Assembly (NCBI GenBank): GCA_040357565.1
Contig: JBDODJ010000079.1
Direction: 5' to 3' (one strand)
Length of the DNA: 48,104 nucleotides
Source of the DNA: Cercozoa sp. M6MM
Lineage: Eukaryota; Protista; Endomyxa: Ascetosporea
The position numbers and the translations under genes are program-made. Under the pieces are notes generated by a model. That model searched no databases. It was not told the DNA's origin and was given only the letters and a program-made list of their open reading frames with translations. Shown piece by piece: positions 25-40,826 of the stretch; positions within the stretch are counted from its first letter, which is position 1; each line of letters starts with the position of its first letter.

Positions 25-1063
25 GGAAGCGACCAAACACGAACCCGTTCCTGATCTTTTTGGTACGAAATTGTTTTTTTGTGTATCCGCTTGTCATCCG
101 CGCGGACGCGATTTGTTGTGTCACAGGTCGAGCAGCGCAACGAATACCGGAAGCGACACCGCGGCAACTTCCGCAACGCCGATCTGGCCAAGTGCGTTTA
201 ATTTTTCCGTTTTTTTTTTTTGTATTTTCCCACATCCGCGCGGACGGAAAAATACAAATAATGTCCAGGATGCTGGCGCCGACGTGGCGCGACATGACGC
301 CGGAGCAGAAGCAGCCCTACGTGGACCTGGCCGAGAGCAACAAGGCCAAGTTCCGCATGATGGTGCGTGTTGCCCGGACTGACCCCGTACCCCCCTTGAC
401 CCCCCTGTGTGCGCAGGTATGGGAGCAGCAGCAGGAGGAGCGGCGCAAGCAGGGCCTGCCGCCACTGCCGCCGCCGCAGCCAGAGCCGAAGAAAATGAAG
501 CAGAAGATGCGCGGCTTTGCGCAGCAACAGCAGGTACATTGATCGATCATGATCGATCAGAGTGACCATGTGATCGATCAGAGTGATCGACTATTGATCG
601 ATCAGAGTGACCATGTGGATAGGCCTCGATGATGGCGCTGCCGTCGGTTCTGTTCGCGCCGGCGGCGCTGGGCTTTGCGCCGGTACTTTACCCCCCTGTT
701 TACCCCCCCGCCCCCCCGTAGCCAGTGCCGGGCAAGCCGCCGCAGCAGGTGACGCCGGCGCAGCCACTGATGATGCCGCCGATGGCGGCGGCGTGTCCGC
801 CGGGACAGGTTCCGCCGGGACAGGTGCCTCCGCCCGGAGCGCTGCCGCAGTCGATGCCGATGATGATGCCGCCGATGCAGATGGCGATGCACATGATGCC
901 GCTGGTGCCGCCGCCGCAGCATCTGATGCCGTCCGCGGGGATGCCGTCCGCGGGGATGCCGCAGATGCCGCCGTCCGCCGGTATGACTATGCCGCAGATG
1001 CCGCCGATGATGCAAATGCCGCCGCTGGGCATGCCGCCGATCACCAGCAACAACAACAACAAT

Positions 1064-1106
<43 letters not shown>

Positions 1107-1378
1107 GCAGTCTTGCGCAGGAACACACGGCCGGTGCAACAACAACAACAGAAACAACAACAACAACAGAAACAACAACAGCAACACCAACGGCGGCAGA
1201 GACAACAACAAGTGCCACTGCCGGTGCTACTGCCGAAAACAACAACAATGACGACGACAACCGCGCGGACGACAACAACCGCGCGGACGAGGCCGGCAGT
1301 GCTGGCGCCGCACCCAGTCCCACGACCGGTGCGACGGCGAGCCCGATTGCGCCGTCCGAGTCATCGTCGGCCCACTAG
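25..1378 (+). CDS. HMG-box protein with Pro/Met/Gln-rich and poly-Asn/Thr low-complexity C-terminus (5'-partial, spliced)
   Basis: Hand-spliced exons 25-62, 127-191, 269-362, 417-533, 623-682, 722-1378, all GT-AG, give KRPNTNPFLIFLVEQRNEYRKRHRGNFRNADLAKMLAPTWRDMTPEQKQPYVDLAESNKAKF, matching the HMG-box pattern. Stop TAG at 1376-1378. The window starts inside an intron. Confidence 0.85.
1048..1106 (+). repeat. (AAC)n trinucleotide tract encoding poly-Asn
   Basis: Seen directly in the last HMG exon. Confidence 0.95.
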
Positions 1379-2132: not shown

Positions 2133-2941
2133 AACATTCCTGTTTGAAGTGTTTGCGAACCATCTTTCCTAGAGCTGCCTAATACACCCCGCCCGTTGAA
2201 TTCAGTTGGCGCGGATGGTGGACGTGTTGCCAGTAAACTTTAAGCGCCTCGTGGGCGCCTACATTCGCTTCTAATCTGAACGTGCGACAAATCCTGCAGA
2301 ATCGGTATTTTTAGTTTCTAAATACCATCGAGATGTAAGTTTAAGTTAGAAATAAAGTATCGGTATTTTTAGTTTCCCAATATACCCATCTAAATGTAAA
2401 CTTAGAAATACAATATGTTGGTTGGTTGTTGTTGGTGCCCAGGACACGCTTGTTGACGAGGTGGTAGCCCAAGCGATGCAGGAGGTCCAAGTGCCGCCTG
2501 AGTACCAGGAAGGTGGAAACTTGCGGCCACTGTGTACGGTCAGCAGCTGTGCCAGGACCTGCGCCGTCGCTACAACGATCCGGACCCGATGGCTCTGCAC
2601 TGAGCAAACTACGTCATTTCTAGAAATAGGGCGGAACTCACTTCTAGAAATAGACATTCCACAAACTAGCGCGCTTGTTTTGTTTTTTTTTTGGCCTGGA
2701 GCTTGCACAACAACGGCATCGACTTGGATGTGCTTTTTGAACTGCTTTTTACGACATCAGTCACCAGTATGGTGGCCCGGTTCGGTCCTCTACGTCGGCT
2801 TCTTAAGGGAGCGCCGGAGATCGAACTCTTGGGGAAGTTTAAGGCAACAACCGGATTTTAATCGTGCTCTTACAAGCGCAGAAAAGCCCTCACCACTGAG
2901 TGCGTTTTTGAGTTTTTGGCGTGACCCGGCGCGCCAATATA

Positions 2942-3447
2942 ATGTTGACTCGGTGCGCTCGGATACGTCGTGCGTGGACAGCTCAGGGTGCTCGTCTTGC
3001 GAGCGGTATGTGCAGCTTTCGGTGCGAGTGTGCGATCTACACTATTCTGTATCTTTAGAACCCGTTCCGACGGCAGGGGAACTGTCGCATGCTCTCACCC
3101 GGTTTGCGGAGGCAAACAAGACCGCGATTCGATGCGCCACCGCAGGAATATCGATTCTGATGTTTTTGGGGATTGTGTTGGTCGAAGTGCGTGTACCGTA
3201 CTCTCTCTTATCGGCGTATTTGGCGGTTTTCATTGAGTTTCTCGTGCCATAGCTGAGCAGCAAGGTCGATGAATTCTACGGCCGAATCGACAGCCAGGCT
3301 GACGCCATTCGGTCGGATATGAACAGAGTGTTGTGTGCTGCCCTCAATGCCAATGTCAGAAGCGACTCTGCTGCTGGCCAGTCGGACTCAAGCTCAGACC
3401 AGTCGGACGCAAGCTCAGAGGATTCGAGTCCGCAGCTTCCAGAATGA
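2942..3447 (+). CDS. Small 3-exon orphan protein (130 aa): presequence-like N-terminus, one TM helix, short coiled coil; copy 1 of a duplicated gene
   Basis: Exons 2942-3005, 3059-3192, 3253-3447 splice in frame: MLTRCARIRRAWTAQGARLAS...AGISILMFLGIVLVEVRLSSKVDEFYGRIDSQADAIRSDMNRV...PQLPE*. The same structure is conserved in the inverted copy at 20229-20756. Confidence 0.7.
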
Positions 3448-3521
3448 TGGAACGAGAATTCTAACTGAATTCGCTAAAATAATCCTGTTAATGTACTATA
3501 CTATTCTACCGGCATTCTCTC

Positions 3522-7235: not shown

Positions 7236-7286
<51 letters not shown>

Positions 7287-7296
7287 NNNNNNNNNN

Positions 7297-7345
<49 letters not shown>

Positions 7346-7918: not shown

Positions 7919-8185
7919 TGGCTACACACAACAACGCTCAATCCATTCGAGCGCTTCCGGTGCACTTTAATGTGTAAAACGTCGCTTTGCCTGATCGGGC
8001 TCTGATACTATTTTCATAGACTGTTAAACGTACTACAGCTGTGCTGTGGTGTGCTTGTATTAATTTCGTGTCGTTCTAGTGCATATTTGTGGAAGCAACG
8101 ACCTACGATTTTTTGTACTGGTTTTCGCCTGCTCGTGCGCTCTCGTGGTCCGCGCGGATTCCGTTTTTTGTCGTCTGTTTCGCCA

Positions 8186-9942
8186 ATGAACGAGCTGGCG
8201 CGATGGCATGACTTAAACATGGTGAGGGTTGAAGCTGCAGGAGATCTGCAATGTAGGGTGCAACCTGGTCTTTTCCCAGGCACCGGCGGAACTTCGGTGC
8301 GATGTGACCCTGCGCAACGGACAGTGCTTCCATTGGTCTGTGAGCAAACTGAATCAAGATAACGAGCCGTGTCGATGGCGAGCCGTATTGGCGCGTTCCG
8401 TGGCCGTTGGTGCGTTTGAGTTTTTGTATTCTGCTGTTCGCGTTTTTCGTGTTGTTTTGACCTCGTTGTCGTAGAGCTCTGGCAGCGCCCGGAAGCGACG
8501 TGGTTCCGCGTGCTTGGCTGCAGCGACGCCGACTGGCGAATTGCGCTTCAAAGCGTGACGAAACAAAGCGAAATCGAAACCGGAAGCGAAAGCGAAAGCG
8601 AAAAAAGCAACGAAAGCGAAACCGAAACCGAAAGCGAAAGCAAAAGCGAAATCGAAAGCGAAAGCGAGTTGCCGCGCATCGAAGAAGTTCGAAAAATTCT
8701 GGCGTTGCACTTGCATGCCGATGTCGCTTTGACTGAACTTGGTCAAGATGTTTGGAAATCGACCGATGTCGCTCCTTTATTAAACCCTGGGTGAGTTTCA
8801 ACTATTTTCGTTTTAGTCGTTTTTGATCGCATGCAGCGTTTCTCGTTTGATCTTTTTTGCAGTGCGTTCCAAGGCTTGCGACTGCTGAGACAGGAGCCAT
8901 GGGAGTGTTTAATTTCCTTCTTGGTGTCTGCCAACAACAACATGTCAGTTTCTATAGAAAAGCTGTGGAAGCTAGTTGAAATGGCTTTGTGTGTGTTGTG
9001 GATATAGCAAGCGAATAGAGTCTCTTCTGACCAAGCTTCGCGAAACCTACGGCACTCGAGTGGAAGTGTTCGACTGTCTCAAGAAGCAAAGCGAAAACTC
9101 GAGCGAAGAAGCAGTGAAACTCGGCGAAATCGAGCCGCTAGTCAAGGCTGGGCAGATGTTCAAGTTCCCGACACTGGCGCAACTGAGCGCCGAGAGTGAG
9201 GAGACCTTTCGCACGATGGGACTGGGCTACCGCGCGCCTCGACTGGTGCAGACAATCAAGACAGTGGCTGCCAAAGGCGGCATAAAGTGGCTTGAGTCGC
9301 TGCGAGACTTGCCAGCCTCGGCCGAGAGCCGAAAGCACGTACGACAGGAACTGCTGGCACTGGCGGGTGTGGGACCCAAGGTGGCCGATTGCGTGGCCTT
9401 GTTCTCGCTGGACCGGCTGGATCTGTCGCCTGTGGACACGCACGTCTGGCAGATCACGCAGCGCAGGTACATGCCGTTGCTGAGACAGCGACTCAGACAG
9501 ACGCAGGGCAAGAAGACAACCAAGCTGCCCAAGAGTGTCACGCCTGCTGTTCACGACGCTGTCGGCGATGTCTTTCGCTCTCTCTACGGCCAGCATGCTG
9601 TACAACCTACCCTTTACCCTCATGCCCGTTTACCTTTCTCTATCCTTTTACTTCCCCCATCCCATACCTTCTCCCATCCTGTAGGGCTGGGCACAGCAGT
9701 TGCTCTTTGCTGCCGAGTTGCCGCAGTTCAAGCAGCGACTCGTGCACACCAAGAGGCCGTCCGAGTCGGTCGGCGACAGTTCAGCTAGTGATACTGGTAC
9801 CAAACCCACCAGCCAGAGTGCGAGTGCCAGTGACTCGCACTCTCGCGACGATTCGGAACTGAACGACGAAAATGCCGACGCGAACGAACCGGCGCGCAAG
9901 CGACGCCGTCTGCGTCCTCGACGCGTCGTCAACTATCGCTGA
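8186..9942 (+). CDS. OGG1: 8-oxoguanine DNA glycosylase/AP lyase
   Basis: Spliced: [56 protein letters not shown], HhH-GPD motif LLALAGVGPKVADCVALFSLDRLDLSPVDTHVWQI (catalytic Lys and Asp), AGWAQQLLF; basic NLS-like tail RKRRRLRPRR. Confidence 0.95.
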
Positions 9943-15825: not shown

Positions 15826-15910
<85 letters not shown>

Positions 15911-16993: not shown

Positions 16994-17060
<67 letters not shown>

Positions 17061-17847: not shown

Positions 17848-19704
17848 ATGCTTCAAAGCGAATGCATCTACAATCATGCCTTTATGCTATTAAGCGCTGA
17901 TCGGGTCAGTTTTGTGATGCGTTTCTTGTTTTCGAATGCGGTTAAGGCTGTCAAGCCACGAGTTCTCCCAAGCAAGGCTCTAACGCTTTTCCACAAAGGC
18001 GATGTATGTCGCAGTACAACGGTACACACAACGGTAAATTTACACAAAGGCGACCGAGTGCTCGCGGCACGTCTCGTGGAATGCCATGTGTGCGGATTTA
18101 AGCGTTGGTTTTGAGTTTTTGAGATTATAAGGGCTTTCTGTCCATCAGCAAGGAGTCTTTGTGTTGTGTGGAGTTTGTGTGGAGTAGGTAATATTTTTTT
18201 TGCTTGGTAAAAAAGGTTCCCTAGTTCTCGGCATTCATATTTTCAGGGCGATCATCGCGGCACAGCACAGTTCTGCCGCGCGAGTGTTTGTTGTGTTACT
18301 ACGTTGTGCGTTCGCGTGTGCTCATACACATGTCAGGCGAAATAGATGTGTCAAAGCGCCTGCTAGAGGCCGTAGCACCGAATCGTCTCATCGCTGTGCC
18401 GAATGAGGACAAGCAGTTCGTGCTCGCTCGTGTCATCGACGCCACGCGCTCTGTATGTCGTATGTGCTATGTTCTCATGTTTGGTGTAGCTCTGATTTCG
18501 ATTTGCGTTCAGGAAGTGAATGCCGTGCCAGCTGACGCTCCTGGTGGACTCATGAGTGCGTCCGCGCGGACGTATTTGTGGTCGCACGTGAGACAGCTCC
18601 GGGAGCCCGTACTGTCACAGGAAAACTTGCTCGTGATGCTAACGCACAATAACTCGGGTCTTTGGACGCAACGATACGTTCGTGCGTCATTTCGGAGGTG
18701 CGTTGGCACTCAGCCAGTTTTGTGGTTCTCGCGCCTTTTTTTTTATTTTCGAGATTGTGCGTGTGTGCAGAAAGGAGGCAAATGGGCGCTACCACGTTAT
18801 CGTCAATGGCACAGAACGCGGGTACTCGTTCTTCCTGTCTTTGCTGTGCCCTGTTCAGCCCCAGTAACCTTTGCCTGTAGTGTGCCAGAGATGGCAAGCA
18901 ACGTCGTGCAGGAATTGGGCACGATTCCGGTGCGACTCGTGATTCCCGATGTGCCCGCCGAAGCTGCCGTGCAGGCTGCTCTCGTTGTGTAACCTCGGCC
19001 AAAGTTTGCTCTTTCTGCTGTGCACATGATGTGAACACATTGTGCATTTTATCGAGTACACTACTTACATTGCAGCAAGAGAAGACCGCGATTGCGACTG
19101 AAGAAACGCACGCGACCGACAGCACATGCCAGTAGCGAGGACAGTGTGTTGCTGGACACGCGGAAACAAGTGGCACGCGGCAACATGCGACTCAGTGCCC
19201 AGGTAGGACGTTCCTCTTTTCCCTTACCCTACAGTACCGTGTGTTCTGTATATGTGTACTGCACAGTTAAGGAAGGAGCAAAAACCGCAGCCACGCGTGC
19301 CGTCGTCGGCACTGGCGGCGCAGTATGACGTGCCACTGCCGCGATTAGCCCTCCGCGCGGTGCCTGCCGTGCCGGACAACATCGACGCCGTTGATATCGA
19401 TGCCGCCGATCGCGACACCAGTGTCCCACTCACACAAGGCGACATTGCTGTCGGGGTACTCTCTGCATAGCTCCCTGCCTTTGTCAGTTGGGATCTGTGC
19501 TCACTTTTGGGGTTAGAGAGGATATGCCGCGTGCAACGGACGACGACGGCGCTGGAACGAGTCCACCACTGTTCCCAAAGTCGGCACCGACGGCAGACGA
19601 CTCGAGGTGGCGCCTTTCGTCGCCCTCTGACGCCACGGGTGCGCTGCCTGCGCGTTCCGTTCTGTACAGTCGAGCTCTTAGTTTTCAACGAAAGGGAGCT
19701 CTAA
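17848..19704 (+). CDS. Hypothetical multi-exon protein
   Basis: Coding-like exons (GEIDVSKRLLEAVAPNRLIAVPNEDKQFVLARVIDATRS; EVNAVP...; QQEKTAIRLKKRTR...) separated by GT-AG introns. Start and the frame of the last exon are uncertain. Confidence 0.45.
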
Positions 19705-20228
19705 TTCCATTGCTCAGTTGTTACTGCACACTTTCTGTCGTCATTACTCTGACCAGCCGCGTGGAGGAAGAAGTTTAAGAGTGTTTGGCTTGGTACCTTG
19801 CTCTGAGACCTAACTACTGACTCAGTGGATTGCTGTTGCTGTAGATCTTGCCTGGACAGAGTCCTTGCAGAGAAGCAGAAAGCTCCGGTCGGTTAGTTTT
19901 GTTCACTTCGTCGTGTGTTCACAGGCGGAGTTTTTCTTTCTTAAACGCATTGTTACGAGCAAGGACGTCTTCCTTCGGTCGAGATCCTGTGGGATCACTT
20001 CGAGACCCAGTAGGTGTATTCACCTTCAGTTCTAACGTTGACTTCTAACCTTGATTTATTTAGTCGCTCCTTTCCCTTACTGATTGAGCAAAGTAGCCGC
20101 AGTAAAACAGTGCCGTTCGGACCCGGACCCAAATCGATAGACCTGACTGAGGAGAGAATACCGTTTCGTAGCATAATACTGTACATTAACGGGATTTTGA
20201 ACGAAATTAGTTTCAAGTTCCCGTCCCA

Positions 20229-25359: not shown

Positions 25360-27795
25360 ATGCAGGACGACGAAGATGCCGAGTTGCAGGTCGCGCAAGT
25401 GCAATCGCTAGTAGAAGCAGCGTTAACAAGCATTCGGCATGCGTAAGTTTGTTTTGATTGTTTACCAGACCAACCAGAGGATTGAGATATGCTTGACTTG
25501 ATTGAACTGAACGCAGTCACGGAAAAGGCGAGCAAGAGATTGACGAGGCGAGTTTCGCTGTTCGACTGGTACCATCGAGATATTGTTTCTCTTGGCATGT
25601 GTCCATCCGTTAAAAACAGGTGTTCGCCAAGTTGACACTCTTGCTGAAAGAAGAGGTGAGCGAGAACACAAAACAGTTTCTGTTACGAGTGAAAGTGCGT
25701 TTCTGTGGGGTCGTAAATCAAGCAAACCTGTGTTTCTCGACAGACGTTGTACAACGATGAAGTTCTGGCCGAACGCGTCGCCATGGACGTTGCGCCGCTG
25801 CTGCAGCAGCTGCAGCAACTCTACCGCAGTGCAGGTATGTTTTGCCCCCCCTGCCTTTCTAGCTTAACCTTCTATCCTTGTTCTGTGTCACTTTGTCTTG
25901 TTCTTGTTACCCTGGACCCCTATGGCCTATGCCCCTTTGAGATTGGGTGTTCACACGGACAGGTGACGCGTGCTACGACGTGATGTGGCGCCGCGAGTCG
26001 CTGCTGTGTCTGATGGCGATACTAAAGTGCGAGCGGCAGGACTTCATCACAGGTGCCTTCGTTGACTTATGTGCTCTGTGTGGTCTCATGTGCTTCCACA
26101 GACATCGTTGGCGGTATCAACACGATGGATGACATCGAAGATGATGGTATATGCTCTCATTGTTATCTACCAGGTTACCTCCTCCCCTGCTGGTATACAG
26201 GCTGCGTATGGCGCACGGTGTCGGCGCAGTTGCAGCACTCCCAACGCGCGTCGCACTGGCTGGCATCGAATCTCTTGCCGACCGAACTTAGTACTTTCTA
26301 TCTCTCTTCTGCATTTACTGACTGGAGGGCTGTGTGTCTACCTGTGCCAACAGACATGGACACGGTGCATCCGATACACTTGCTTCCGCGAACGACTGAT
26401 ACTCTGGTCTGCTTGAGTGCACTGGTTGTGGTATGTACCGATACTCTGATACACTTCGTACCAACCCGACACATCCTGCTTGCTGGGTGGGTGGACAGGC
26501 CAAACGAAGGACGCAAGCCTGGTCGCTCATTCTGCCGATGAGTCAACTCTGCCTGTCGAGCGAGTTCTCTGAGGTAGTCTGCCACTCCCTTCACCTTTCC
26601 CTATCCCCTGTCTACTTATACCCCTGTGTTGCACAGTCGGTGCCTCTGCAGCAGTGGGTGGTGACGCTGCTGGTGCTGTCGGGCGCACTGTCACTGTGTC
26701 TGCGCGGACGGCAGGGTCAGGACGCACTGGCCGTGGCGCACGTGGTGTTGCGCAACCTGCTGCAACCGAACAAGAACTCATTGCGCGAACTGGCACTGTT
26801 GCTGCCCGACGGTGCTCTGCCACAGACACTGGACACGGTACAGTGACCTTCCCCGGGACACTTGTACCCTTGTGGGGCAGCTGGACATGTTGTGCATGTG
26901 GGTGTGGCTACAAAACTCAGGCTCAGCCGGTGGCCGAGTGGTTCAAGCGGCAGGTGCACTCGCTGCGCTTCTACTCGGCCGTACAGCAGCGACTGCAGAC
27001 CAATGCGACGCTCGATGACCTGTACAAATGGACCGCACAAATGGACAGCTGTACATATGGACAGCAGTACAAATGGACTGCTGTATAAATGGACTGCTGT
27101 ACAAATGGACCGGTGTGTATGTGCGTGCAGAGTCGACTCCACGACCGATGCCGAGCTGAGAAACGCGCTGCAGCAACTCATGAATGAACCGCCTGTGCAG
27201 GCACTCACTGCCTTGGTAGCTCTTTCTACCCCCCTGTTTACCCCCCTGTTTACCCTCCCTGTTTACCCCCCTGTTTACCTCCTGTTTACCCCATTGTATG
27301 TGTGTGTCACGACGTGTATGTGTGTGTTGTTAGCATACGCACATTCAGCAGTTGTCGGCGCAACTGCAACTCATCAAAAATGTAGCTCCCGTGATCTTAC
27401 CCCCCCCTTGACCCCCCCTTGACCCCCCTCTTGACCNNNNNNNNNNNNNNNNNNNNNNNNNNNNNNNNNNNNNNNNNNNNNNNNNNNNNNNNNNNNNNNN
27501 NNNNNNNNNNNNNNNNNNNNNNNNNNNNNNNNNNNNACCCCCGTTTCTCATGAGCAGACGCATGGACACCCTCTGGTGTTCTTCATGCGTCATTTGATCG
27601 GTCTGGTTGTGGCCGAGGTAGCCTGCATGTTGTTTATCCCGCTGTCCCCATTCAATCCCCCCATTCAAAGACACAAAGCGACGCCGACATCGACAACTTT
27701 GGCACACTCATCGAAGTGGCATCTGAGCAGGCACAGCTGGTACTTGTGTCCGTGTGTGTGTCCATGTGTGCGTCCACATGGACCTGTGTTTGTCC

Positions 27796-27870
<75 letters not shown>

Positions 27871-30800
27871 ACACGGACCTGTGTGACAGATGTGGCAGAC
27901 CACGTGGTGCATCGGGCCTCTCGTACTGCACCGCCTGCTGTGCCTGCGCCGCCAGTCGCTCACGCAGCGCATCGCCGCACTCACGTGGTACCCCTTGCCT
28001 CGTGACCATCCACGTGACCACCCACATGACCACCTACGTGACCACCCATGTGACCACCCACGTGACTGCCTTAAATGGTCACTCACTGACTGACACATGT
28101 GCGCAGGATCGGCGACTTCTCGCGACTGCTGCTGAAGTCGGTGCTCTCTCTCTCCTCTCTCTCTCTGTGTCTCTGTCTGTGTGGAGTGGTCGCTTCTCAC
28201 TGCCACGTGTCTGACTGGTGTGTGAGTGAGTGAGTGAGTGTGACCTGACTCGACTGAGTGGTACCATTTGCCACGTGCACAGCCGACGCCGCTGGTGCCG
28301 TTTTTGTTCGCCGAGGCTCTAAGTCGCGGCGACCTCGTGGGCACGCTGTTTGGTGGTACCTCTTGCCTCGTGCCGAGTGGCACGTGTCTCACTGAGTGAC
28401 TGGGTGACTGAGTGACTGGGTGACATGTGACCGAGTGGGTGAGTGACACGTGTCCACTGCGCAGAGGTGCACGCGCAGCTGGTGCAGCGCGCGGCGGCGC
28501 CACTGGCGCTCATGTCGCTGCACGGACTGCTGGAGCGGCGGCACGTGGCCACGGTGCTGGCCGGTGCCACGAGTGATCGGCACGAGTCGCACGTGCGCGG
28601 CCTGCTGGACTGCGTGCGCGACACGGTGCGACTGGTGTGCCAGGCCACGCAGACCGCGCGGCCGCACGCGCAGCGCACGCGCCTGCTCGAGAGTGTGCTG
28701 GCCTGCGTGTTTCCGATGGATCAACCGATCGATCAGGTGGACAATCAAGTGGTCGATCAGTCAGATCAGGTGGTCGATCAGTCAGATCAAATGGTCGATC
28801 AGTCAGATCAAGTGATCGATCAGTCCAGTGACCACAGCGATCACTCACAGATGCAGCGCTTCGCCGTGGACCTGCTGCCCTTCTTGGAGCTACTGCCGCC
28901 GCCGCGCGCCGCCGCCTGGACCGCGCGCTTCGTGCGTTTCGCCGCGCGCGCCGTCGCTTCCGCGCGGACGCTCTCGGCGCGGCGGCAGCTGCGACGCCAG
29001 TTGCTGCGGCACGCGCCGTCGCACCCGGCTGTGGTTTTACCCCCCATCTTACCCCCCCATCTTACCCCCCCATCTTACCCCCCATCTTACCCCCCATCTT
29101 ACCCCCCCACCTCCACCATCTTACCCCCATCTTACCCCCCCCATCTTACCCCCCATCTTACCCCCCACCTTACCCCCATCTTACCCCTCCCCATCTTACC
29201 CCCATCTTACCCCCCATCTTCCCCCCAGTTTACCCCCCATCTTACCCCCCAGTTTACCCCCCTCCCGCAGGTGCTGCAGTTGGCGACAACGCTGTGTCAC
29301 CAGGCGCATCGGCAGCTGTGCGCTCTCCTGTCGGACGGTGTGTGCACAGAGGGAGACGGTGACACTGTGAGTGAGGAGGACGACGGTGACACTGCGAGTG
29401 AGGAGCACGTGCTGTACGGTGCCTCGGTGGCGCTGTCGCTGCTGTCGCTGCTGCCGTCGCACGTGGCCACGTGGCAGTCGCAGTGCCCGGCACGTGCGCT
29501 GCTGGCGCTCTACCTCTACGTGGTGCCTGCGTTTCACCCCCCTGTTTACCCCCCTGTTTACCCCCCACTTTACCCCCCCACTTTACCCCCCACTTTACCC
29601 CCCACTTTACCTCCCCACTTTACCCCCCCTATACCCCCCACTTTACCCCCCACCTTACCCCCATCTTACCCCTCCCCATCTTACCCCCATCTTACCCCCC
29701 ATCTTCCCCCCCGTTTACCCCCCCTGTTAACCCCCCTGTTTACCCCCCTGTTTACCCCCCTGTTCACCCCCTGTTTACCCCCCTACCCCGTGCCCCAGAA
29801 CGGACGGTCCGAAGGCCAAGTCGCAGCTGTGCCGTCGCGCGGCGTTCACTCTGCTGCGGCGACTGAGTGCGCACGTGCCGCCTCAGTCGCACGTGCTAAG
29901 TGACGGTAGGTCACGTGCTCTCTCTCTCAGTATACACTGTGACGGTGTGATCGATCAGACGACCCGGACGAGTGGTGGCGCCTCTTTGTTCTGGGCGGCG
30001 GCGACCTGGAACGCTCCGTGCAGTGCCTGCGCGACGTGCTGCTCGAACTCGAGATGGGCGGTTTACCCCCCTGTTTACCCCCCTGTTTACCCCCCCCCCC
30101 CGTTTATCCCTTGTTTATCCCCTGTTTATCCCCCAGTTTTACCCCCCTGTTTACTCCCCTCTTACCCCCTCTTCACACCTATTTGCCTTCCTATTACCCT
30201 TCCTATTACCTTCCTATTACCCTTCCTATTTACCTTCCTATTACCCTTCCTATTTACCTTGCTATTTATCTTCCTATTCACCTTCCTATTTACTCCCTAT
30301 TCACCTTCCTATTTACTCCCCTATTTACTTCCCTATTTACTTCCCTATTTACTCCCCTATTTACTTCCCTATTTACTGCCCTATTTGCCCCCTATTTACT
30401 CCCCCCATTAACCCTGCCCGTGTGCCCGCAGAGAGGCAGAGTGCGACGCGGCAGTGCGAGGCCGTGGGCCTGCACAACTTTGGCTGCACGTGCTACATGA
30501 ACGCGCTGCTGCAGCAGTTGTTCCACACGCGCCGCTTCCGCAACACGGTGCTGGCGCTGCGGCCGAGGCAGCTGCTGCGACACCTCGCGTCCGACGAACT
30601 CTCCTGTGGGCTTGTTTAGTAGATACAGTACATGTGTATATTCAGTGTATATGTATAGTATAGATGTATAGTATAGATGTATAGTATAGATGTATGTATA
30701 GTATATATATAGTATGTATAGTATATTGTATAGATGTATATATAGTATATAGTATATGGTATAGGTATAGTATAGTATAGAGTGTATAGTAGAGGTATAT

Positions 30801-33800
30801 ACAGTTAGATGGATATATACCTATACACTATTTAGATGGATATAGTATAGTATGGGTATATACAGTTAGATGGATATAGTATAGGTATATACAGTATTTG
30901 TATAGTGTCAGTTAGTGTCTGTGTATACTATTTGTATAGTATAGTGTGTATATGTATTATAATAGTGTATGTGTATATGTATACTGTATATACGGATATA
31001 TTATAATATATACATATGTTTATGTCTCTCTATGTATATGTACCTCTTCCCTCACTTTACCCCCCCCCCCGTAGCGACGGAGCAGTTGTGGAGCACGCAG
31101 TTGCAGCGCGTGTTTGCGCAGCTTTTCGCGTCGGTTCGCCGCTACATTCGACCGACGTCGCTGTGCGTTTCTCCCACTCTCAAGCGTTTCCTGTGTTGCT
31201 GTGGACTTGATATGTGTGTCCGCGCGGACAGAGTCAAGGTGACGAAACGCGAGGTGCACAAGCAGGAGGACGCGCACGAGTTCTTCTCGGAACTGCTGGA
31301 CCATGTGGAGGAGGAGATGTCGCACGAGTCGCCGGTACTTTCAGCTTTGGCTTTTTGAAGCTTTTGCTCGTGAAAGCTTTTGCTTTTTGCTTTTGCCGAA
31401 TAGCTTTGCGCTACTGTGTGTGTTAATGTGTGTTGTGTATGTGTATGTGTGTGTCAATGTGTATGTGCAGGAGTGGAAGCAGGCAGTGGGCGCTATTTTC
31501 GGCGGTGAGTTTTCCAACGAACTCATCGGACGGTACGTTTGGCTTCTCTCTTTGATTTCGAAATTCCCGCTTTGATTTCGAAATTCCCGCTTTGATTTCG
31601 AAATTCCTGCTTTGATTTCGAATTCAAGCTTTGATTTCGAAATTCCTGCTTTGCTTTTCGAGGAAACTGCTTTGATCAACGATGCTCACGTATGCACACA
31701 CAGAGGAGGAGGCTGTACGCACAAGAGTGACCGCAAGGAAGAGTTCCGTGCCATTCCACTCGAGGTAGCTTGCAGCTTTTGCTTGTAAAATAGCGTTGGT
31801 AGAGTGAAAGCTGTGAGAGTGAAAGCTGTGATAGTGACAGCTTTGAAAGTGATAGCTTTGAAAGTGAAAGCTTTGAAAGTGAAAGCTTTGAAAGCGAAAG
31901 CTAAGTGAAAGGTTTGAAAGCGAAAGCTAAGTGAAAGCTTTGAAAGTGAAAGCTTTGAAGTGAAAGTGACAGGAAAGTGACAGCTTTGACTGAGTGTGCA
32001 GTTGCGACCGACGCTGAAGGAGTCGCTGGAGGCACTGGTGCAGGGCGAGCTACTGGACGGCGACAACTGCTTCCGGTGCGACGAGTGCGCCAAGCCAGTG
32101 CCGACGCTGAAGCGGCAGTGCATACACCGCCTGCCGCAGACGTTGGTGCCTCATGTTTCTCCTACCTTTACCCCTCCTTTAGCCCCCTCCCCTCCCTTTA
32201 CCCCCTTCCCCCAGGTACTGACACTGAAGCGGTTCACGCTGAACTACCAGACGATGTTGTCGGAGAAGGTGCACACGCGACTGGAGTACCCGCAGGTAGT
32301 GTCTACCTGCAAGACGCTAGATACTCGAGATACACTAGGTGTCCCTCAGGAACTGGACATGCGTCCGTACACACAGGCGGCACTTAACAGCACGGACAAC
32401 AGGGAGGGCAGTACCAGCACAGAGGACAGTAGTGCCGACAGGGAAGGCAGTTTGAACAAGGAGGAAGGCACGTGCCAGGACAGGCAGATGTACCGTCTGA
32501 CGGGCGTGCTGACGCACAGTGGTATCGCCGGCGGCGGGCACTACTACTCCTACGTGCGACGGCACGACGACACGTGGCTCCTCTTCGACGACCGGCGCGT
32601 GCTGCCGGTCTCGCTGGAGGAGAGTAACCTATGCGATCACTCTGCGATCACTCTGCGATCACTGGTCGATCACTCTGCGATCACTGATCGATCACTCTGC
32701 CTGTGTGTGTGTGTAGTGAAAGAGGGCACCTTTGGCGGCCGCAAGAGCAGCGGCGAGCCGCGCGTCTACTCGGCCTACATGCTGTTCTACACGCGCGTTG
32801 CCGACGCTGCCCACGTGCCCAGTGGCAGTGACAGTGACCACATGTGCACTGACCACGTGTCCACTGACCACGTGTCCACTGACCGCGTGTCCAGTGACAG
32901 TGGCCACGTGTGCACTAGCGATGAGGGCGAGCACGTGCGCAAGCGACGCCGACTCATGAACGGCGCCGCCAGCTGTGATCGCGACGGACAGAAAGACGGT
33001 GATCGCGACGGTGATCGTGACGGTGATCACAGTGACCACAGCGATCAAGACCACAGCGATCAAGAGGAGTCCGATCAGACCGCACCGTCGCTGGCGCGAG
33101 TGCTGGCGTGCCGCGCCGTCGACGACGTGCTGGTAGCCACCTGTACCCATGCAGAGTGACCACGTGGCACCCGCCCACTCCACTGGCACGCTGTGCGATC
33201 GGCACGTGTGTCTCAGTGTGCGCACGTGTCTCTCAGTGTGCGCACGTGTCTCTCAGTGCACGTGTGTCGGTGTGCGCAGGGCCTGATGCCGGCGCGACTG
33301 CGAGCGGCCGCGCGTCGCGCCAACGCGGCACTGCTGTACCGAGCTCTGTGTCATAGTGACCACCCCAGTGACCACCCAGTGACCACGTGACCACTCAGTG
33401 ACCACCCAGTGACCATGTGACCACCCAGTGACCATGTGACCACTCAGTGACCATGTGGGGGTGTGTGCAGACAGCGGCGCGTGCAGGCGCACCCGTTGTC
33501 GCTGCAGGCGCTGCTGGCGGCGGTGCGGCACGCGCTGTCGCACCGTGCGTCCGCGCGGCAGACGGTGCGCGCACTGCAGCTGCTGCACGTGCTGCACACG
33601 GTGCACCACGTGGCCGACCGAAACAACAAGGAAAACAACAACAACGGCGACAACAACAACGGCGACAACAACAACAACGGTGCCGCGCTGAGCGACTGCG
33701 CCGCCGCGTGGCAGCACTGCGTCGGCCTGTCCGCGCGGACGCTGCCGACGGTGCCGCAGGTGGCGGCGGCGCTGCTGCTGGCGCCGCTGATATCCGACGG

Positions 33801-36800
33801 TGACGGTGGTACCGATGATCCCGGTGTGACTGATGCCACTGATGATACCGATGATGACGGTGAGTTCGACCGTCTGACGCGACTGACGGTGCTGTGCCGC
33901 CTGTCCGCGTCCGAGGTAGCTGTCCCCCTGCCTCCTTGCCTTAACCCCTACCCCTTTACATTTAACCCCCCTCCCCCCCCCCCCCGGGACAGGTGGCCCG
34001 GTGGCTGCCGGAGCGAGGCGTGCTGGCACGTTGCGTGCGACGGTTGCTGCAGCAGCTGGGCAGTGAGACTGACAGTGACACTGACGGTGACACTGACGGT
34101 GATCATTGGAACTGGGATCATCGGCACTGGGATCAGCGGCAGTGGCACCGTCACCCGGTGCTGCACGTGCTGCGACAGGTGCGCCGACTGGTGGACGCGC
34201 GCGCACTGTCGCCGGCGGCACCGTCGGCCTCGGTGTGTCTGGGTGCTGCGCGACGGTTCGACGGTGTCTGCGTGGTACTGACGGTGTTGTGCGATGCCGT
34301 CGCACTCACCGATGATCCCAGCGACACCGTCGGTGACTCGGATCGGCACTCCGATCACTCTGGGCATCAGTCACGACGACACGTGCTGCGCGGTCTCGCC
34401 GTGGCGCTGCTGCTGTCGCAGCTGTGTCCTGCCATCGGTTTTACCCCCCTGTTTACCCCCCTGTTTACCCCCCCTGTTTACCTCCCTGTTTACCCCCCTG
34501 TTTACCCCCCTGTTTACCCCCTTGTTTACCCCCCCCCCCCTTTTAACCCCCCTTGCTCCCTCTTGCCCCCTCATACTCTCAGTCTTTACCCTCTCCCCCA
34601 GGTTCCTTCCTGTCGGTGGACTCGGTCTTCCTGTCCAAGCACAGGTCGATACCTGCTGTGTAAGTCGCCTTTAACCCTCTACACCTACCCCTGTACCCCT
34701 ACCCCTGGTAGCAAGAAGTGGAGACCGCAGGCACTGGTGGCGCACCGCGTGCTGACACTGCTGGCCAGAGTGCGCGAGCTGGCACATGGTACTACCACTG
34801 ATCACTCATGGGTGACCACGTGTGAGTGAGTGAGACCACGTGTGTCAGTGAGACCACGTGTGTGCGTGTGTGGGTGAGCAGGACGACTGCGCGAGGTGTT
34901 GCAGGCCGAGCTGCTGCAGTGCTTCCGTCACGTGCCGGCGCAGCTCGCGTTTTCCGAGCTTCTGCAGGGCCGGCGCTACGCCTCGCGGCTGCGCCGACTG
35001 CGACTGCTTGACACTGACACTGACGGTGCCACTGACGGTTCTGCCACTACTGATACCGACGGTGCCACTGATCGATCAGTCTTCCTGGGCGGTCATCTGA
35101 CCACGTGGCTGCGTCTGTGCGCCGAACTCGCGTCGCCGCTGCCACTCTTTGAGGTATCACCCTGACCACGTGACCATCTCAGTGACCATCTCAGTGACCA
35201 CGTGACCACCTGAGTGACCACCTGAGTGACCACTCAAGTGACCACGTGACCAAATGTGCAGGCACTGGTGCGCACGGCGGTCGAGCAGAACGAGTGGCCG
35301 CTGCTGCACATGCTCGCTGTGCAGACTGGTGCGTGCTTTACCCCCCCCTGACTGAGTGACTGGTGACTGGGTGACCACGTGTGCACGTGTGTGTGTGCAC
35401 GTGCGCAGTCAGCATGGACGGTGTGTCGGAACTGACGCAGTCGCTGCTGACGGTGCTGTCGCAGGCGCGGTCCGACCACACTGCGCACGTGGACGACGGT
35501 AGCCGCTCCCTTCCTACTTGGCACGTGCCTCACTTGGCACGTGGCTTACTTGGCACGTGGCTCACTTGGCACGTGCGTGTGTGTAGTGCGAGCGACGGTG
35601 CGACGGTGCGCGATGGGCGAGCTGCGCCGGCAGTACTACCACTGGCCGTTGGCGCGCGAGCTGCTGCAGACTCTGTTCGCGTGCACGGTGCGTTTCTCCG
35701 CCGACGGTGACGGTTCCGCTGATGGCAGTGACGGTGACACTCTGGACGACCCCAGCACCCGTACCACTTGTCTAATATCAACATATCTATATGTATCTGT
35801 ATCTATATCTATATATCTTCTATATAGATCTCTATGTACGTATTTTAATATATATAGAGATGCCAATACGTATATATATATATATGATATATAGATATAC
35901 TAAACATGTATGTTCTGAACATATATGTATATATATATACCAATAGTTACCTTTGCATACTGATATATATAATGTGTGTACATGATGCGTACAGCACTGT
36001 CGCCGCTGGAGTGGCAGGCGCTCGTGCGGTGGATCGCTGCCTCCGTGCCCTACGGCTGCGATGGTAGTTTTACCCCCCCCCCTGGCTACCCCTACCCTAC
36101 CCTACCCTTCCCCTCCCCTCTCCCTTCCCTGGGACAGGCATGAGCGACGAGGTGCAGCTCAAGACGGAGAATCCGCAGTTCCATGTGCATGGCGAGCGCG
36201 TGTCTTTCTGGGTACCTTTCTCTCTGGGTGGTCACTGACACGTGCTTTCTGGGGCTGGTCACTCTGGGTGGTCACCTGCCCAGTGAGCACGTGTCACAGG
36301 GTCCAACCTCCCCCTCCCCCACTGAGCACAGGCCGAGCGAGCGTCGGTGCTGCGTCTGCTGGCGCAACACTGCATGTGCCGTCCTGCCGACTCGCAGGTC
36401 GTCCTGGGTGGTACCTTTGCACACGTGACTCTATAGTCACCTGGCACGTGACACCTGGGTGGTCACCTGGGTGGTCACCTGGGTCAACTTGGCACGTGCG
36501 CAGACTGGCACACGGGCGAGTTGCTGCGACTGTGCCGGCAGGCGCACGTGCGCGCACTGGCGCCGCGCGCCCACCTGTCCGAGGCGGATGCGCAGGACGT
36601 CTTCCGCGCGGGCGCGCTGTCCGCGCTGACGCCGAGAGGTGAGCGGCTGGCGTCCGCGCGGACGTCGGCGGTGCTGGCGCTGCGGCAGCTGGAGGCACTG
36701 GCGCCGCTGCTGACGGCCGCGCGGATCGCCGCGGAGACTCTGGAGAAACGCCAGTGTCTGACTGACGGTGACAGTGACGGTGTCAGTGACGGTGATCGCA

Positions 36801-39800
36801 CCGTGCTGACTGATCTGTTGGCACGTGCCACTGTTCTGTGCGCGGCCCTGCTCGCTACGAGACCCGACGACACGCAGGTCAGGAGGTACCCCCTACCCCT
36901 TGCCTCCTACCCCCTACCCCCAACCCTCCACCCCCACCCCCTAGCCCTTACCCCCACCCCTACCTTACCCCCTACCCCTTACCCCTACCCCCTGGGGGCA
37001 GTGTGCTGATGCAGGCGTCGCACGTGTGCCAGCGAGTGCTGCGACACTCGCACTCTCTGCGTGCCGACCTGATCGATCGCGTGTTGGACACGTGCTGGTA
37101 CCTTGTGCACTGACTGGACACGTGGGACTGACTGGGTGACTGACTGGGTGACACGTGTCCTGTGTGACTGCTGCAGTCAGGTGGCGCAGCAGGAGAACGC
37201 GCGTGTCAGTCCACTCGACCTGCCACTGGTACTACCCCCTCCCCCTACCCCCCCCCCCGGCCCCCGTGCCCCCTACCCCCAGGTGAAACTGCTGCTGCTG
37301 GGCGATCTGGCCTCGGTGGACGACATCGCCGACGCTGCTCCGTACACTCTAGTTTCCTTTTACGGCGCTGTTTAGGGGCCCCCCCCCCAGTCGCATGTGC
37401 TTCGTGAGCGCGAGTGGCGTGCTGGCGCGTTGGCACGTGCGCGCGGAGAGGACGGTGCCGTCGCACGCGACGGTGGCGCTGCAGCAGACGGTGCAGCTGA
37501 TCGATCGGCTGAGTGCGCACGTGAGTGAGCACGTGAGTGAGCACGTGGTGCCACTGACGACGCAGCAGGAGTGGCTGCTGGTGCGGGCGCGACTGCGGCG
37601 CGACACGTGGCTGCCGCTGCTGTGTGCGCACATGGATGACACCGTCAGTGATGACGACACCGTCAGTGATGACGACGGTGCCACTGATGATACCGTCAGT
37701 GTGCGTCAGTGGCTGGCACGTGTCCTCAGTGGCCTCGTGCGGCGGCAACCGTCGCTGGCCGCGGCGGTGCTGGAGGTGGCCCTGCCGCCGCTGCAGCGAC
37801 TGCCGTCGGAGCGGCCGTGGCACCACGTGTGCCGCCAGGGTGGACACGTGTCCCGCCACGTGGCGCACGTGCTGCTGCCGCGACTGCAGGCCACGGCGAC
37901 GGTGCTGCAGACGGCGGCACGTGCGCAGTGCGACGCTGCAGCACCGCTACTCACGGGCCGACTGGACGCACTGGTGGACTTCCTGGGCCACGTGCCCTCG
38001 CTGCTGCACGTGCTGCACGTATCCACTGGGCCCGGTCACAGTCCCAGTCACAGTCCCAGTCACAGTCCCAGTCGTTCTACCAGTGACACTGACGACACTG
38101 ACGATGCAGAGCACGTGGGCGACCCGCAGGCACTGCTGTCGGTGCACCGGTACCTCGTGCAGGTGTGCCAGCTGGTCTGCAGGCTGCCACTGACGCGTGA
38201 GGTGACTCCCCTACCCCCCCCCGATCCTCTTTCCCCCCCGACCCTCTTTCCCCCCCCCCCCCCCTCCTCCGACAGTACGTGACGCAAGTGGCGGCGTGGC
38301 TGCAGGCGTGGCACGCGACGGCGCGACTGACGCCGCTGTGGCCGCAGCTGCTGCGCCGACTGGGCGACCTGCGCGACCGTGCCAGTCAGCTGTACAGTTA
38401 CTGATCCAAGTGTTGATCCCTATTGATCCCAGTGTTGATCCCTATTGATCCCAGTGTTGATCCCTATTGATCCCAGTGTTGATCCCTATTGATCCCACTC
38501 TGACTGGGGAGTGATCATTTGTCTGTGTGACTGCACAGGCAACTGCTGCTGCCGTCGGCCTTGGCGGTGGCCGTGTCCATCACCCAGTGCGACCGCGCTC
38601 TGCCTCGCAGCGACTGGGTGCAGCAGGTGTGCTTGCCTCCTTCCCCTACCCCCTTAACCAACTACTCCCTTAACTAATTACTCCCTTAACTAATTACCCC
38701 CTTATCCAACTACCCCCTTAACCAACGACCCCCTTTACCAACTATCTCCTTACCCCCCAGGTGCACGAGCTGACGCAGCAGGTGGCGCAGGTGTCATCAC
38801 CAACGCCACCGATCGGTGTCTCCGATGATCCTGACGGTGTGGCTGCCGATGCTGACGGTGCCACCGAGATCAGCGACGGTATGGCAGGCAGCCGCGCGGA
38901 CCGGCAGCACTACCTGTTGCCGGACATGTGGCTCCCGCTGGATCACGTACTGTGGCTGCCGCGGCACCCGCAGTACGTCGCCCTGACGCAGGTACAGATC
39001 TCGACCTACCCATCGATCACTGATCGATCACTTTTGATCACCTGCGATCACTGATCGATCAGCTGTATTGTCTGTAGGCTGCACTGGACCTGCTGGACGC
39101 CGTGCGCGCGAGCGGCGACTGCGCGGCGCAGTTCGCGTGCTACCTGCCGCTGTACCTGCTGCTGAGTCACCGGCCGTCCGCGCGGACGCCTGGCGCTGCC
39201 GTCGGTGACCCTTCCGCTGATGCGTCCGCGGATGCGTCCGCGCGGACGGCGCCGGTGGAGTCTCTGCGTGCGCGCGCACGCCGTGGCACTCGGCGCGTGC
39301 TGCGAACAGTGGCACGGGCACTGCACCGTGCCTACGACGGTTTCGGCGACGGTGACGGTTCCAGTGACGGTGACGGTGACGGTTCCAGTGACGGTGCGGC
39401 GATCACTGAGTTGGCACGTGTGAACCGCACGTTCTACGGCGTGCTGGTGCTGTGCAATCGCATCGCGCTGCAGCCGGCCTACGAGGGCGTGCGCGACTCG
39501 TGCCTGCTGTTCCGCGCGGACGTCGACGACACCGACATTGACGGTGACAGCAGCAGTGACGGCGACACAGTGACAGACGGTGACACGAACGGTGACACTG
39601 ATGACCATAGCGATGGCGATGATACTACACAGGACACCGACGTCGGCCTGCACGTGCTGATTCGACAGGTGGCGCTGGCCGATGCCTTCCTGGCCACGCG
39701 TGCCTCGGGGTAGTGTCCCCCTTTACCCCCCCCCCTTTACCCTTGGCCCCCCCCCCTACTTCCCTACCCTGCTTACCCCCTCTCCTCCGTCCCCAGCGTG

Positions 39801-40826
39801 CCCCTGCTGGAGGAACTGCTGCGGTACCAGTTGCACTGCCTGGAGCAGTCGCTGGACTGGACGGGCGATCACTACAGGTGACCACTTTGACTGACCAGTG
39901 ACCAGCCACATGACTGCACTGTGTGACTGGACTGATGTCTGTGGACTGACTGGTGCACGTGTGTGTGTGCTGTGCAGGAGGTTCATTTCGCACGGTCTGA
40001 TGGACGTGCTGGGCGGCGGCGTGTGTGCCATCTCGCCCTTTGGTCAGTCTCTGCCGGGTCAGTCTCCCTCTCCGCCGGGTCAGTCCGCGGGTCAGAGCGA
40101 ACAAGCGTGTTCGCTGCTGAGTGCCACGTGCCAGGCGACAGTGCGACGGTGGCAGCGACGCGTGCAGCGAGAGCCGCCGCAGGTGCGACGGTTCCACACC
40201 GAGACACGCGGCGGCACGTGCGGCGGCCCCGCGCTGCCGCTGCTGGACGACGTGCTCCGCGCGGCTGCGCAACTCGACCAGTCTCTGCAACAACAGCAAG
40301 AACAACAACAACAAGAACAACAAGAGGTCACTCTGTCGGAGCGACACATGTGTCTGCTCTTTCTGCAGCAGCTCCTGGCCGAGCATGTCATTGTGGTAGA
40401 GCTTTACCCTCCTAGCCTTCTAACCCTACCCCCTACCCCTACCCCGCCCCCTCGCAGGTGCAAGACTTGCTCGACGGGCCGGTGCGTGATTTGGCCTCAT
40501 TCGCCGATGCCATGGATGGTACTTCTGACCCTGTTTGCCCCCCTCCATAACCCCCCTTCCCTTAGTGTGCGACGATAACGACACAGAGGCGGGCGTGTTA
40601 GTTTCGCAGGAACCTCCGCGCGGACACGAGACGCAGCAGGCGCCGTCGCTACAGTCGCTGCACGAGGCACAGGTGTCTGCTGACCCTCGTGTGTATCTGT
40701 CGTCTTGGTTATTTACTGCTGTGTTGGGGGCAGAACGACGCGCGCGAGTTGTTCCGTCAGGCCAAGGGTCACTACCCTACCGACGACCTCGAACTCGCCA
40801 TGTTCCTCTCCATGCAGGCGCAGTAG
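25360..40826 (+). CDS. Very large ubiquitin-specific protease (peptidase C19), USP9/USP24/USP34-like, dozens of exons, C-terminal UIM-like motif
   Basis: Cys box VGLHNFGCTCYMNALLQQLF (~30464-30523), QEDAHEFFSELLD, GGEFSNELIG, LVQGELLDGDNCFRCDECAK, LKRF, ELDMRPYT, His box YRLTGVLTHSGIAGGGHYYSYV...WLLFDD, and SAYMLFY. Long helical N- and C-terminal regions. Ends DDLELAMFLSMQAQ*. A 100-N gap lies in an intron; the start codon is approximate. Confidence 0.88.
27437..27536. other. Assembly gap (100 N)
   Basis: N-run inside a C-rich repetitive intron; the flanking exons are phase-compatible. Confidence 0.99.
29035..30431 (+). repeat. Cluster of three introns filled with C-rich (TTACCCCCCATC / GTTTACCCCCCT / TTCCTATTTAC) minisatellites
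   Basis: Seen directly at ~29035-29270, 29531-29798 and 30061-30431. Confidence 0.9.
30606..31074 (+). repeat. AT-rich (TATAG/TATA) repeat intron
   Basis: Seen directly. Confidence 0.85.
31335..32001 (+). repeat. Three consecutive introns with AAAGCTTT / GATTTCGAAATTC minisatellites
   Basis: GCTTTGATTTCGAAATTCCC ~20-mer tandem (~31550-31660) and GAAAGTGAAAGCTTT tandem (~31800-31990). Confidence 0.9.

Follow-up and report, generated by a model that had tools for sequence, protein, structure and literature searches.

A perfect 10-bp palindrome iterated across the genome of a cercozoan protist and imposed on its coding sequence

The 48,104-nt contig JBDODJ010000079.1 of Cercozoa sp. M6MM (assembly GCA_040357565.1; contig C79, the whole of which is referred to here as the window) contains 13 copies of TCCGCGCGGA, a perfect 10-bp palindrome, about eight of which lie within one long plus-strand USP gene with a UCH domain at 31996-33159 (Table 1). 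A preliminary description of this DNA listed the start positions of the 13 copies, their 12-mer extensions and the positions of a related word, CCGCGCGGAC, and all of these are exact. The 12-mer GTCCGCGCGGAC is formed at six of the 13 copies (18561, 31219, 33730, 36653, 39177 and 39237), every copy is within one mismatch of it, and CCGCGCGGAC is further present at 1261, 1279 and 38892. In 100 dinucleotide-preserving shuffles of the window the palindrome occurs 0.02 times on average and at most once. We conclude firmly that TCCGCGCGGA is a real and highly specific DNA-level word, that it is present throughout the genome irrespective of compartment and reading frame, and that it is imposed on coding sequence.

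The number of copies in the window is not affected by the two assembly gaps, because these sit in simple repeats at least 850 bp from every copy; one is at 7287-7296 within a (GA)n run and the other at 27437-27536 within a C-rich intronic minisatellite. Both gap regions (7240-7343 and 27396-27545) probably represent collapsed repeats and not a loss of unique sequence. Logan contigs, which represent an independent assembly of the one public run that contains this DNA, match positions 36059-36801 and 38937-39574 with zero letter differences, at a k-mer depth of ~460-500.

The assembly comprises 23.6 Mb in 2,235 contigs, and genome-wide counts were compared with those of a control word in which the letters of TCCGCGCGGA are reversed. 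The perfect 10-mer is present 2,239 times versus 33 for the control, a 68-fold difference, with a mean spacing of about one copy per 10.5 kb. The 12-mer GTCCGCGCGGAC is present 389 times (control, 5) and the 14-mer CGTCCGCGCGGACG 123 times (control, 1). Allowing up to one mismatch in the 10-mer gives 5,087 sites versus 920, and the one-mismatch forms alone number 2,848 versus 887 (~3-fold), such that the ratio of perfect to one-mismatch sites is 1:1.3 for TCCGCGCGGA and 1:27 for the control word. It is chiefly the outer bases that tolerate a mismatch, with observed/expected numbers of 16/1.5, 9/1.8, 5/2.0, 6/1.1 and 4/0.7 for the position pairs from 1/10 inwards to 5/6.

Markov models of orders 0-4 predict only 0.19-0.33 sites (0.26 at order 4) in a 248-kb sample consisting of the window and C1:1-200000, compared with 26 observed, an excess of ~100-fold. 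Orders of six and above approach the observed count because their sub-words derive from TCCGCGCGGA itself. The enrichment first noted in the window is thus not restricted to it and is not explained by a low-order Markov null, and it ranges from 58- to 177-fold in each GC class. Among 10-bp palindromes outside tandem repeats only TCCGCGCGGA is strongly enriched, and the other enriched palindromes, ATTTCGAAAT, TGATCGATCA and (TA)n, are located in tandem repeats. Related palindromes with other centers or spacings (TCCGCGGA, TCCGGCCGGA, TCCGATCGGA, TCTCGCGAGA and TTCGCGCGAA) show no enrichment, and families of half-sites with variable spacing are rejected on these grounds. A general palindrome-creating process is also rejected, as there is only a mild excess of palindromes overall.

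The copies within recognizable genes show how the word is accommodated. An exon of NFS1 (L004:9757-9999) aligns with human NFS1 without gaps over 81 residues (E = 2.5e-23), and the copy of TCCGCGCGGA within it, in the frame xTC CGC GCG GAx, encodes IRAE where the human protein has IMKS. A beta-propeller open reading frame (ORF) of ELP1, located on the minus strand at L035:2024-2881 and matched by Pfam over residues 38-103, has two copies, one at residues 65-68 and the other at 82-85, and both are in the frame xxT CCG CGC GGA and encode PRG. The frame TCC GCG CGG Axx (SART) is used in other ORFs, including those at L014 and L032, and the proposal that the word occupies all three frames in real exons is therefore confirmed elsewhere in the genome. 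TCCGCGCGGA imposes rare codons on these genes, with CGG contributing 10% of Arg and GGA 7% of Gly codons in coding-called sequence. When synonymous codons were shuffled with protein and codon usage fixed (17,355 coding-called codons in the window and C1), 0.40 copies were expected and six observed, and none of 300 shuffles reached six, in agreement with the earlier view that amino-acid selection is not the cause. The copies in conserved genes arose by substitution and override codon preference. There is a corresponding signal in peptides, in that the tetrapeptide [FLIV]RA[DE] is found nine times versus ~3.5 expected, with seven of the nine encoded by the word, a count that is indicative only as it includes loci chosen for carrying TCCGCGCGGA.

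To place copies relative to genes we used a codon-score model trained iteratively on exons recognized by homology (NFS1 and aldehyde dehydrogenase), which is conservative and calls ~20% of bases as coding. Positional statistics draw on the 26 unbiased sites of the window and C1 together with 28 ascertained sites, and exons were searched singly. Under this rough partition the 26 sites are distributed among exons, introns and divergent, tandem and convergent spacers approximately as expected from the amount of sequence that each class contains, with no significant departure. Divergent spacers, as delimited by this home-made partition, have 4 of the 26 sites versus 2.7 expected (p = 0.29); copies in divergent or 5′ spacers include those at 97, 235 and 8149 in the window and at 3666, 102463 and 163864 in C1. 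Only four of the 13 window copies are confidently coding by the codon model. The preliminary description placed copies in exons of unrelated genes in all frames, and while the use of all frames stands from the exons elsewhere in the genome, the reference to unrelated genes was overstated for a window with ~8 of its 13 copies in one USP gene. The assignment of copy 235 to an intron is uncertain, as it directly abuts an HMG-box exon.

The density of copies varies from one per 3.7 kb in the window to one per 19.5 kb in contig C1. In 4-kb bins it increases nearly linearly with what local composition predicts (Poisson slope 0.91), and a slope of 0 is disfavored with a likelihood ratio of 3.2. There are nonetheless clusters that strongly exceed the compositional prediction. 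Seven perfect copies lie within 1.2 kb at L032 (C20:74076-77089, positions 739-1908), together with three in which the 8-bp core CCGCGCGG is intact but its flanks are imperfect; six lie at L035 (C25:96470-99483, positions 1448-2687), four within 0.4 kb at L030 (C14:121434-124447, positions 1217-1608), and eight perfect and seven near copies at 28.9-40.9 kb in the window. Each copy in the L030, L032 and L035 clusters is in a different sequence context, some inside ORFs (such as the ELP1 propeller in L035) and some beside (CAA)n-type microsatellites.

The bases adjoining the palindrome are not random. With the two sides folded together, the adjoining base genome-wide is G at 41%, A at 24%, T at 23% and C at 12% of positions, and the outer preferences are weak, with G at -1 and C at -2 (GCG-...-CGC). 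The two flanks are mirror-symmetric and mutually independent genome-wide, and G is present on both sides at 389 of 2,239 copies (17.4%), matching the single-side product (0.41 squared). Pairs of the A..T, T..A and C..G types are not in excess in the listed places. Independent preferences of this kind fit protein contacts and do not fit pairing in a hairpin or cruciform, and extension of the palindrome as such a structure is rejected because complementary flank pairs are without excess. The report that the sense strand always reads GGAC does not hold beyond the window. A plus-strand C follows 11 of the 13 window copies but only 5 of 13 in C1, and a sense-strand C follows 4 of 7 in L032; in exons, such a bias would be expected from the Asp codon GAC and the Thr codons ACx, and we do not consider it a property of TCCGCGCGGA.

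We tentatively favor, at rather less than even confidence, a role for TCCGCGCGGA as the site of a symmetric dimeric DNA-binding protein, with the perfect form kept at the DNA level. A homodimeric or pseudo-dimeric protein would read two abutted 5-bp half-sites, TCCGC|GCGGA, together with the weak outer preferences GCG-...-CGC, and ~2,200 perfect sites would be held intact in promoter-like spacers, introns and exons, those in exons presumably accommodated through substitution at tolerant codons. The sites would be retained because binding serves a genome-wide function, perhaps a chromatin, architectural or regulatory one. We infer both this retention for function and the dimeric reader, the latter because of the perfect twofold symmetry, the ~10 informative positions and the independent outer preferences. 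The drop in genome-wide enrichment from 68-fold to ~3-fold with one mismatch, the homotypic clusters (L030, L032, L035 and 36.6-40.6 kb in the window) and the mirror symmetry of the flanks are all consistent with such a protein. So are the lack of enrichment of related palindromes, the location of several copies in divergent or 5′ spacers and the presence in the genome of dimeric DNA-binding domains.

Several families of proteins read similar sites, including E2F/DP (CGCGCG core), bZIP (abutted 5-bp half-sites), Zn2Cys6 (everted CGG) and BEN (TCTCGCGAGA and TCCAATTGGA). Six-frame hidden Markov model (HMM) searches of the whole assembly identified one E2F_TDP domain (C21:49403-49570) and one bZIP domain (C82:36430-36579), and these are the only candidate reader families seen, neither of them tied to TCCGCGCGGA. 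The E2F/DP site TTTSGCGCSAAA shares with it a symmetric CGCGCG core, read by two winged-helix domains, but is flanked by TTT/AAA rather than TC/GA. Canonical E2F words do not exceed expectation (TTTCGCGC, 9 versus 17; TTTGGCGC, 12 versus 15), and E2F regulons are made up of promoter sites, in the hundreds, and do not reach into exons. C/EBP-type bZIP sites (ATTGC|GCAAT) have the same architecture of abutted 5-bp half-sites, GC|GC center and 10-bp perfect symmetry, but with ATTGC in place of TCCGC as the half-site, and we know of no bZIP protein with thousands of perfect sites in genes. The Pdr1/Pdr3 element TCCGCGGA, recognized by fungal Zn2Cys6 proteins as everted CGG repeats, has TCCG/CGGA half-sites everted as in TCCGCGCGGA, but the spacing in TCCGCGCGGA is 2 bp longer, TCCGCGGA itself is present 4 times versus 4.4 expected, and Zn_clus (PF00172) gave no match at E <= 0.001, in a search that the control genomes cannot validate. 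The CGCG element TCTCGCGAGA of vertebrate CpG-island promoters, bound by the BEN-domain protein BANP, is a 10-bp perfect palindrome with TC...GA ends, a CG-rich center and a dimeric factor, and has hundreds of copies, in promoters only. Its central six bases differ from those of TCCGCGCGGA, it is present 0 times in the 248 kb, and there is no match to the BEN domain (PF10523) in the whole assembly. Searches for the CG-1 domain and for the Mrr-type domain (PF04471) similarly gave no match in the assembly.

Other observations weigh against a binding site. The sites of ordinary transcription factors are degenerate and lie mostly in promoters, and the 26 sites show no bias to exons, introns or any class of spacer in our rough partition. 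Copies are imposed with rare codons on conserved genes, and the near-linear relation of density to composition is what a process acting on near-cognate sequence would give. The canonical E2F words are not enriched, and the E2F_TDP and bZIP domains are no more than candidate readers.

It is possible, if doubtful, that a sequence-biased DNA transaction instead writes near-cognate sequence into perfect TCCGCGCGGA wherever this is tolerated. Mismatch correction, gene conversion and meiotic drive for the motif-bearing allele are candidates, and would require neither a function at each site nor DNA methylation. No preference for compartment or frame is detectable, the NFS1 copy arose by substitution (IRAE for IMKS), the two ELP1 copies use the rare GGA codon, and copies exceed the synonymous shuffle, all of which such a process would produce, as it would the slope of 0.91 and the steep difference between perfect and one-mismatch forms (1:1.3 versus 1:27). 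However, there is no enzyme candidate, with Vsr, C5 and N4/N6 methylases and Mrr-type proteins all unmatched in the assembly, and the one-mismatch neighbors are enriched 3-5 fold, whereas a substrate pool would be depleted. Moreover, no class of change (transitions, CpG decay or AT-to-GC) is singled out, there are strong local clusters beyond composition, and no eukaryotic precedent was found in the literature searched.

The closest parallel is HIP1 (GCGATCGC) of cyanobacteria, a short perfect palindrome that is tens-fold over Markov expectation, occurs in all frames and in both coding and non-coding sequence, and whose overlapping words are the next most enriched (PMC4390886). The orphan methylases DmtA and DmtC are associated with it and, in recent work, so is natural transformation (PMC13756078). 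TCCGCGCGGA is similarly over-represented, dispersed and frame-independent, overrides codon preference and drops steeply at one mismatch. However, HIP1 is bacterial, 8 bp long and present about once per 0.3-1.2 kb in a quasi-periodic arrangement, whereas TCCGCGCGGA is nuclear and eukaryotic, 10 bp long and ~10.5 kb apart, is clustered and follows local composition, and has no cognate methylase detected among PF00145 and PF01555. The likeness to HIP1 drawn in the preliminary description thus holds for the statistics of the word and fails for cognate methylases and even distribution. The DNA uptake sequences (DUS) of Neisseria and uptake signal sequences (USS) of Pasteurellaceae are words of 9-12 bp with thousands of copies, located in genes in several frames where they alter peptide content, but they are non-palindromic, serve the competence machinery and are often inverted pairs in terminators. 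We know of no eukaryotic counterpart of that machinery. There is some chance, well short of even, that TCCGCGCGGA is a eukaryotic counterpart of these highly iterated and uptake-type words, written and maintained genome-wide by a methylation-free, sequence-specific drive. Such a drive could take the form of mismatch correction with a bias, of gene conversion or of a dimeric binder that shields its site from breaks, with over-transmission of alleles containing the motif. A dimeric binder and a drive can be combined, in that a site protected from breaks would make motif-bearing alleles the donors for repair.

The HIP1 analogy, together with the recognition of HIP1 by DmtA and DmtC (PMC4390886, PMC13756078) and the three CpGs within TCCGCGCGGA, also raises the prospect that a DNA methyltransferase of bacterial or DNMT5-like type might specifically recognize the palindrome, which would then owe its enrichment to methylation-coupled repair. 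We consider this improbable. The C5 (PF00145) and N4/N6 (PF01555) methylases gave no match in the fragmented 2,235-contig assembly, in searches that did not include MT-A70 or type I N6 enzymes, and Vsr (PF03852) was likewise unmatched, even though the same procedure detects single-exon E2F_TDP and bZIP domains. The CpG observed/expected ratio is 1.05, and the three CpG-to-TpG variants of TCCGCGCGGA number 3 versus ~1.3-1.6 expected, no more enriched than transversion variants, so there is no excess indicative of CpG decay. The methyltransferase link proposed in the preliminary description is therefore not supported as it stands.

An element acting in RNA appears very unlikely, one in which copies in the same transcript pair with each other to bridge long repeat-filled introns or to mark transcripts. 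Because TCCGCGCGGA is self-complementary, copies within a transcript can form duplexes of 10-14 GC-rich bp with one another, a single 14-mer could form a hairpin with a 5-bp stem and a loop of GCGC, and many copies are in gene bodies and intragenic clusters (the window USP gene, L032 and L035). But copies are also present in divergent and convergent spacers, the flanking bases are preferred in a fixed manner without covariation, and the stem of a lone 10-mer is only 3 bp.

We regard as highly improbable that the copies are the core of a dispersed repeat, such as a miniature inverted-repeat transposable element (MITE), a transposon end or an excision footprint, or else an artefact of assembly or library construction arising from a linker or ligation junction. 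Inverted repeats or filled-in ligation junctions can yield short perfect palindromes, and GATCGATC is likewise over-represented in this genome sample, but the 40-base flanks of 54 copies are as unlike each other as random sequence (mean identity 0.296 versus 0.278, maximum 0.475), and a transposon or MITE core is rejected by this comparison. The copies in NFS1, where the alignment has no gaps, and in ELP1, which preserve the reading frame without insertion or deletion, similarly reject an insertion or excision footprint, a linker or a Hi-C-type junction; for the last of these we know of no enzyme that suits the 5′-GC fill-in of CCGCGG that would be needed. The contigs of the independent assembly agree, and none of the tandem repeats in the window contains TCCGCGCGGA. 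A repeat or artefact is thus refuted for the copies examined, and the flanks and the exon substitutions bear out the earlier view of a dispersed, DNA-level word that is neither transposon nor tandem repeat. Finally, an origin of the enrichment in base composition, in the usage of codons or dipeptides or in low-complexity coding sequence rich in CpG, as might be suspected from the GC-rich (59-68%) and repeat-filled nature of the richest stretch of the window (28-40 kb), is refuted by the GC-class, Markov and synonymous-shuffle comparisons (the last a 15-fold excess) and by isolated copies in AT-rich DNA such as that at 235.

The genes that contain the palindrome have other distinctive features. 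NFS1 (cysteine desulfurase) is a multi-exon gene at C1:38990-40411 and is adjacent to an aldehyde dehydrogenase gene at 40800-42400 (L004-L005), both on the plus strand and both with short introns of a C-rich type. The best metagenome match to the NFS1 exon is 63% identical and the best protein match to the UCH exon is 29% identical; a 342-residue ORF guessed to be eIF3d gave no match in a search. No close relative of the organism was thus found in the protein and metagenome collections. A strand-specific family of C-rich intron words (TTACCCC, CTTACCCC and TTTACCCC) is present at 27215-40565 in the window and at C1:39190-39400 and 39660-39757 (L004). Read along the sense strand, the NFS1 introns have the form GTACC...CCCTTACCCCC...CAG, and donor sites resemble GTA[C/G]C and not GTAAGT. 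The word TTACCCCC is found 58 times on the plus strand of the window and 0 times on the minus strand, and as it is on the sense strand in NFS1 introns, this one-way orientation indicates that the USP gene is on the plus strand. In the USP gene the C-rich words are expanded to minisatellites with 7- to 12-bp units, such as TTACCCCCCATC with ~19 copies.

Two further words are over-represented in the 248 kb, namely GCACGTGC, with a CACGTG core (46 sites versus 12 expected), and GATCGATC (25 versus 6.6 expected). Both are concentrated in the USP gene (window 28589-40214), largely in short tandem repeats such as ACTTGGCACGTGCCTC and TGATCGATCAGAGTGACCATG.

Table 1. Copies of TCCGCGCGGA and other features of the window.
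Feature	Coordinates	Strand	Context
Perfect copy, aTCCGCGCGGAc	97..106	.	T-rich DNA; 138 bp upstream of next copy; 5′ of HMG-box exon
Perfect copy	235..244	.	Directly after poly-T tract, abuts HMG-box exon; intron end or exon start
HMG-box exon	249-362	+	Pfam E = 6e-6; match begins at about nt 249; adjoins copy 235 on its 3′ side
Two one-mismatch copies, ACCGCGCGGAC, 18 bp apart	1260..1287	.	Adjoin (CAA)n repeats
Inverted duplicate, arms 310 and 171 nt	2933-3471 / 20205-20765		~17 kb apart; 94-97% complementary; without a palindrome copy
Perfect copy, gTCCGCGCGGAa	5429..5438	.	Weakly coding-called, minus strand
Perfect copy	8149..8158	.	Between minus and plus coding blocks, likely divergent intergenic; HhH-GPD-like ORF ~830 bp downstream
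Weak HhH-GPD/HhH glycosylase-like ORF	8976-9788	+	Downstream of copy 8149
Perfect copy inside 14-mer CGTCCGCGCGGACG	18561..18570	.	Between plus-strand coding blocks
Perfect copy	28959..28968	.	Long plus-strand USP gene; C-rich intronic minisatellite begins ~70 bp later
USP-gene intronic minisatellites	29037-29262, 29536-29784, 30061-30413, 34440-34534, 36887-36993
Perfect 12-mer copy, then CAG	31219..31228	.	Start of exon encoding N-terminal UCH motif (KQEDAHEF...)
Perfect 12-mer copy	33730..33739	.	USP gene body; edge of coding-called block
Three one-mismatch copies, at 36603, 36620 and 36716	36603..36725	.	Local cluster around perfect copy 36653
Perfect 14-mer copy	36653..36662	.	USP gene body; ~15 nt past GTGAGC donor-like site; seen in independent contig
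One-mismatch copy, GCCGCGCGGA, then C	38891..38900	.	
Perfect 14-mer copy	39177..39186	.	Next copy 60 bp away; seen in independent contig
Perfect 14-mer copy	39237..39246	.	Seen in independent contig
Perfect copy	39511..39520	.	Coding-called exon, frame xTC CGC GCG GAC (FRAD); range covered by independent contig
Perfect copy	40615..40624	.	Near 3′ end of USP gene

Words imposed on whole genomes irrespective of gene structure are known in bacteria (HIP1, DUS/USS and Chi), where they reveal the machinery of DNA uptake, repair and recombination. We found no described case in a eukaryotic nucleus; in the literature searched, the TCCGCGCGGA string appears only in primers and in human TERT-promoter sequence, no highly iterated palindrome is reported for a eukaryote, and the earlier statement that there is no described eukaryotic equivalent is upheld to that extent. 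In this organism TCCGCGCGGA shapes codon choice, and probably also peptide content (the [FLIV]RA[DE], SAR and PRG motifs), in conserved genes. If it is a binding site, this deep-branching protist would have a cistrome of very large size and unusual strictness that includes sites within exons. If it is instead the product of a biased DNA transaction, it would represent a form of genome-wide drive new to eukaryotes. Such a drive would be tractable, given a short, perfect word and an organism that has apparently been sequenced to great depth (k-mer depth ~480).

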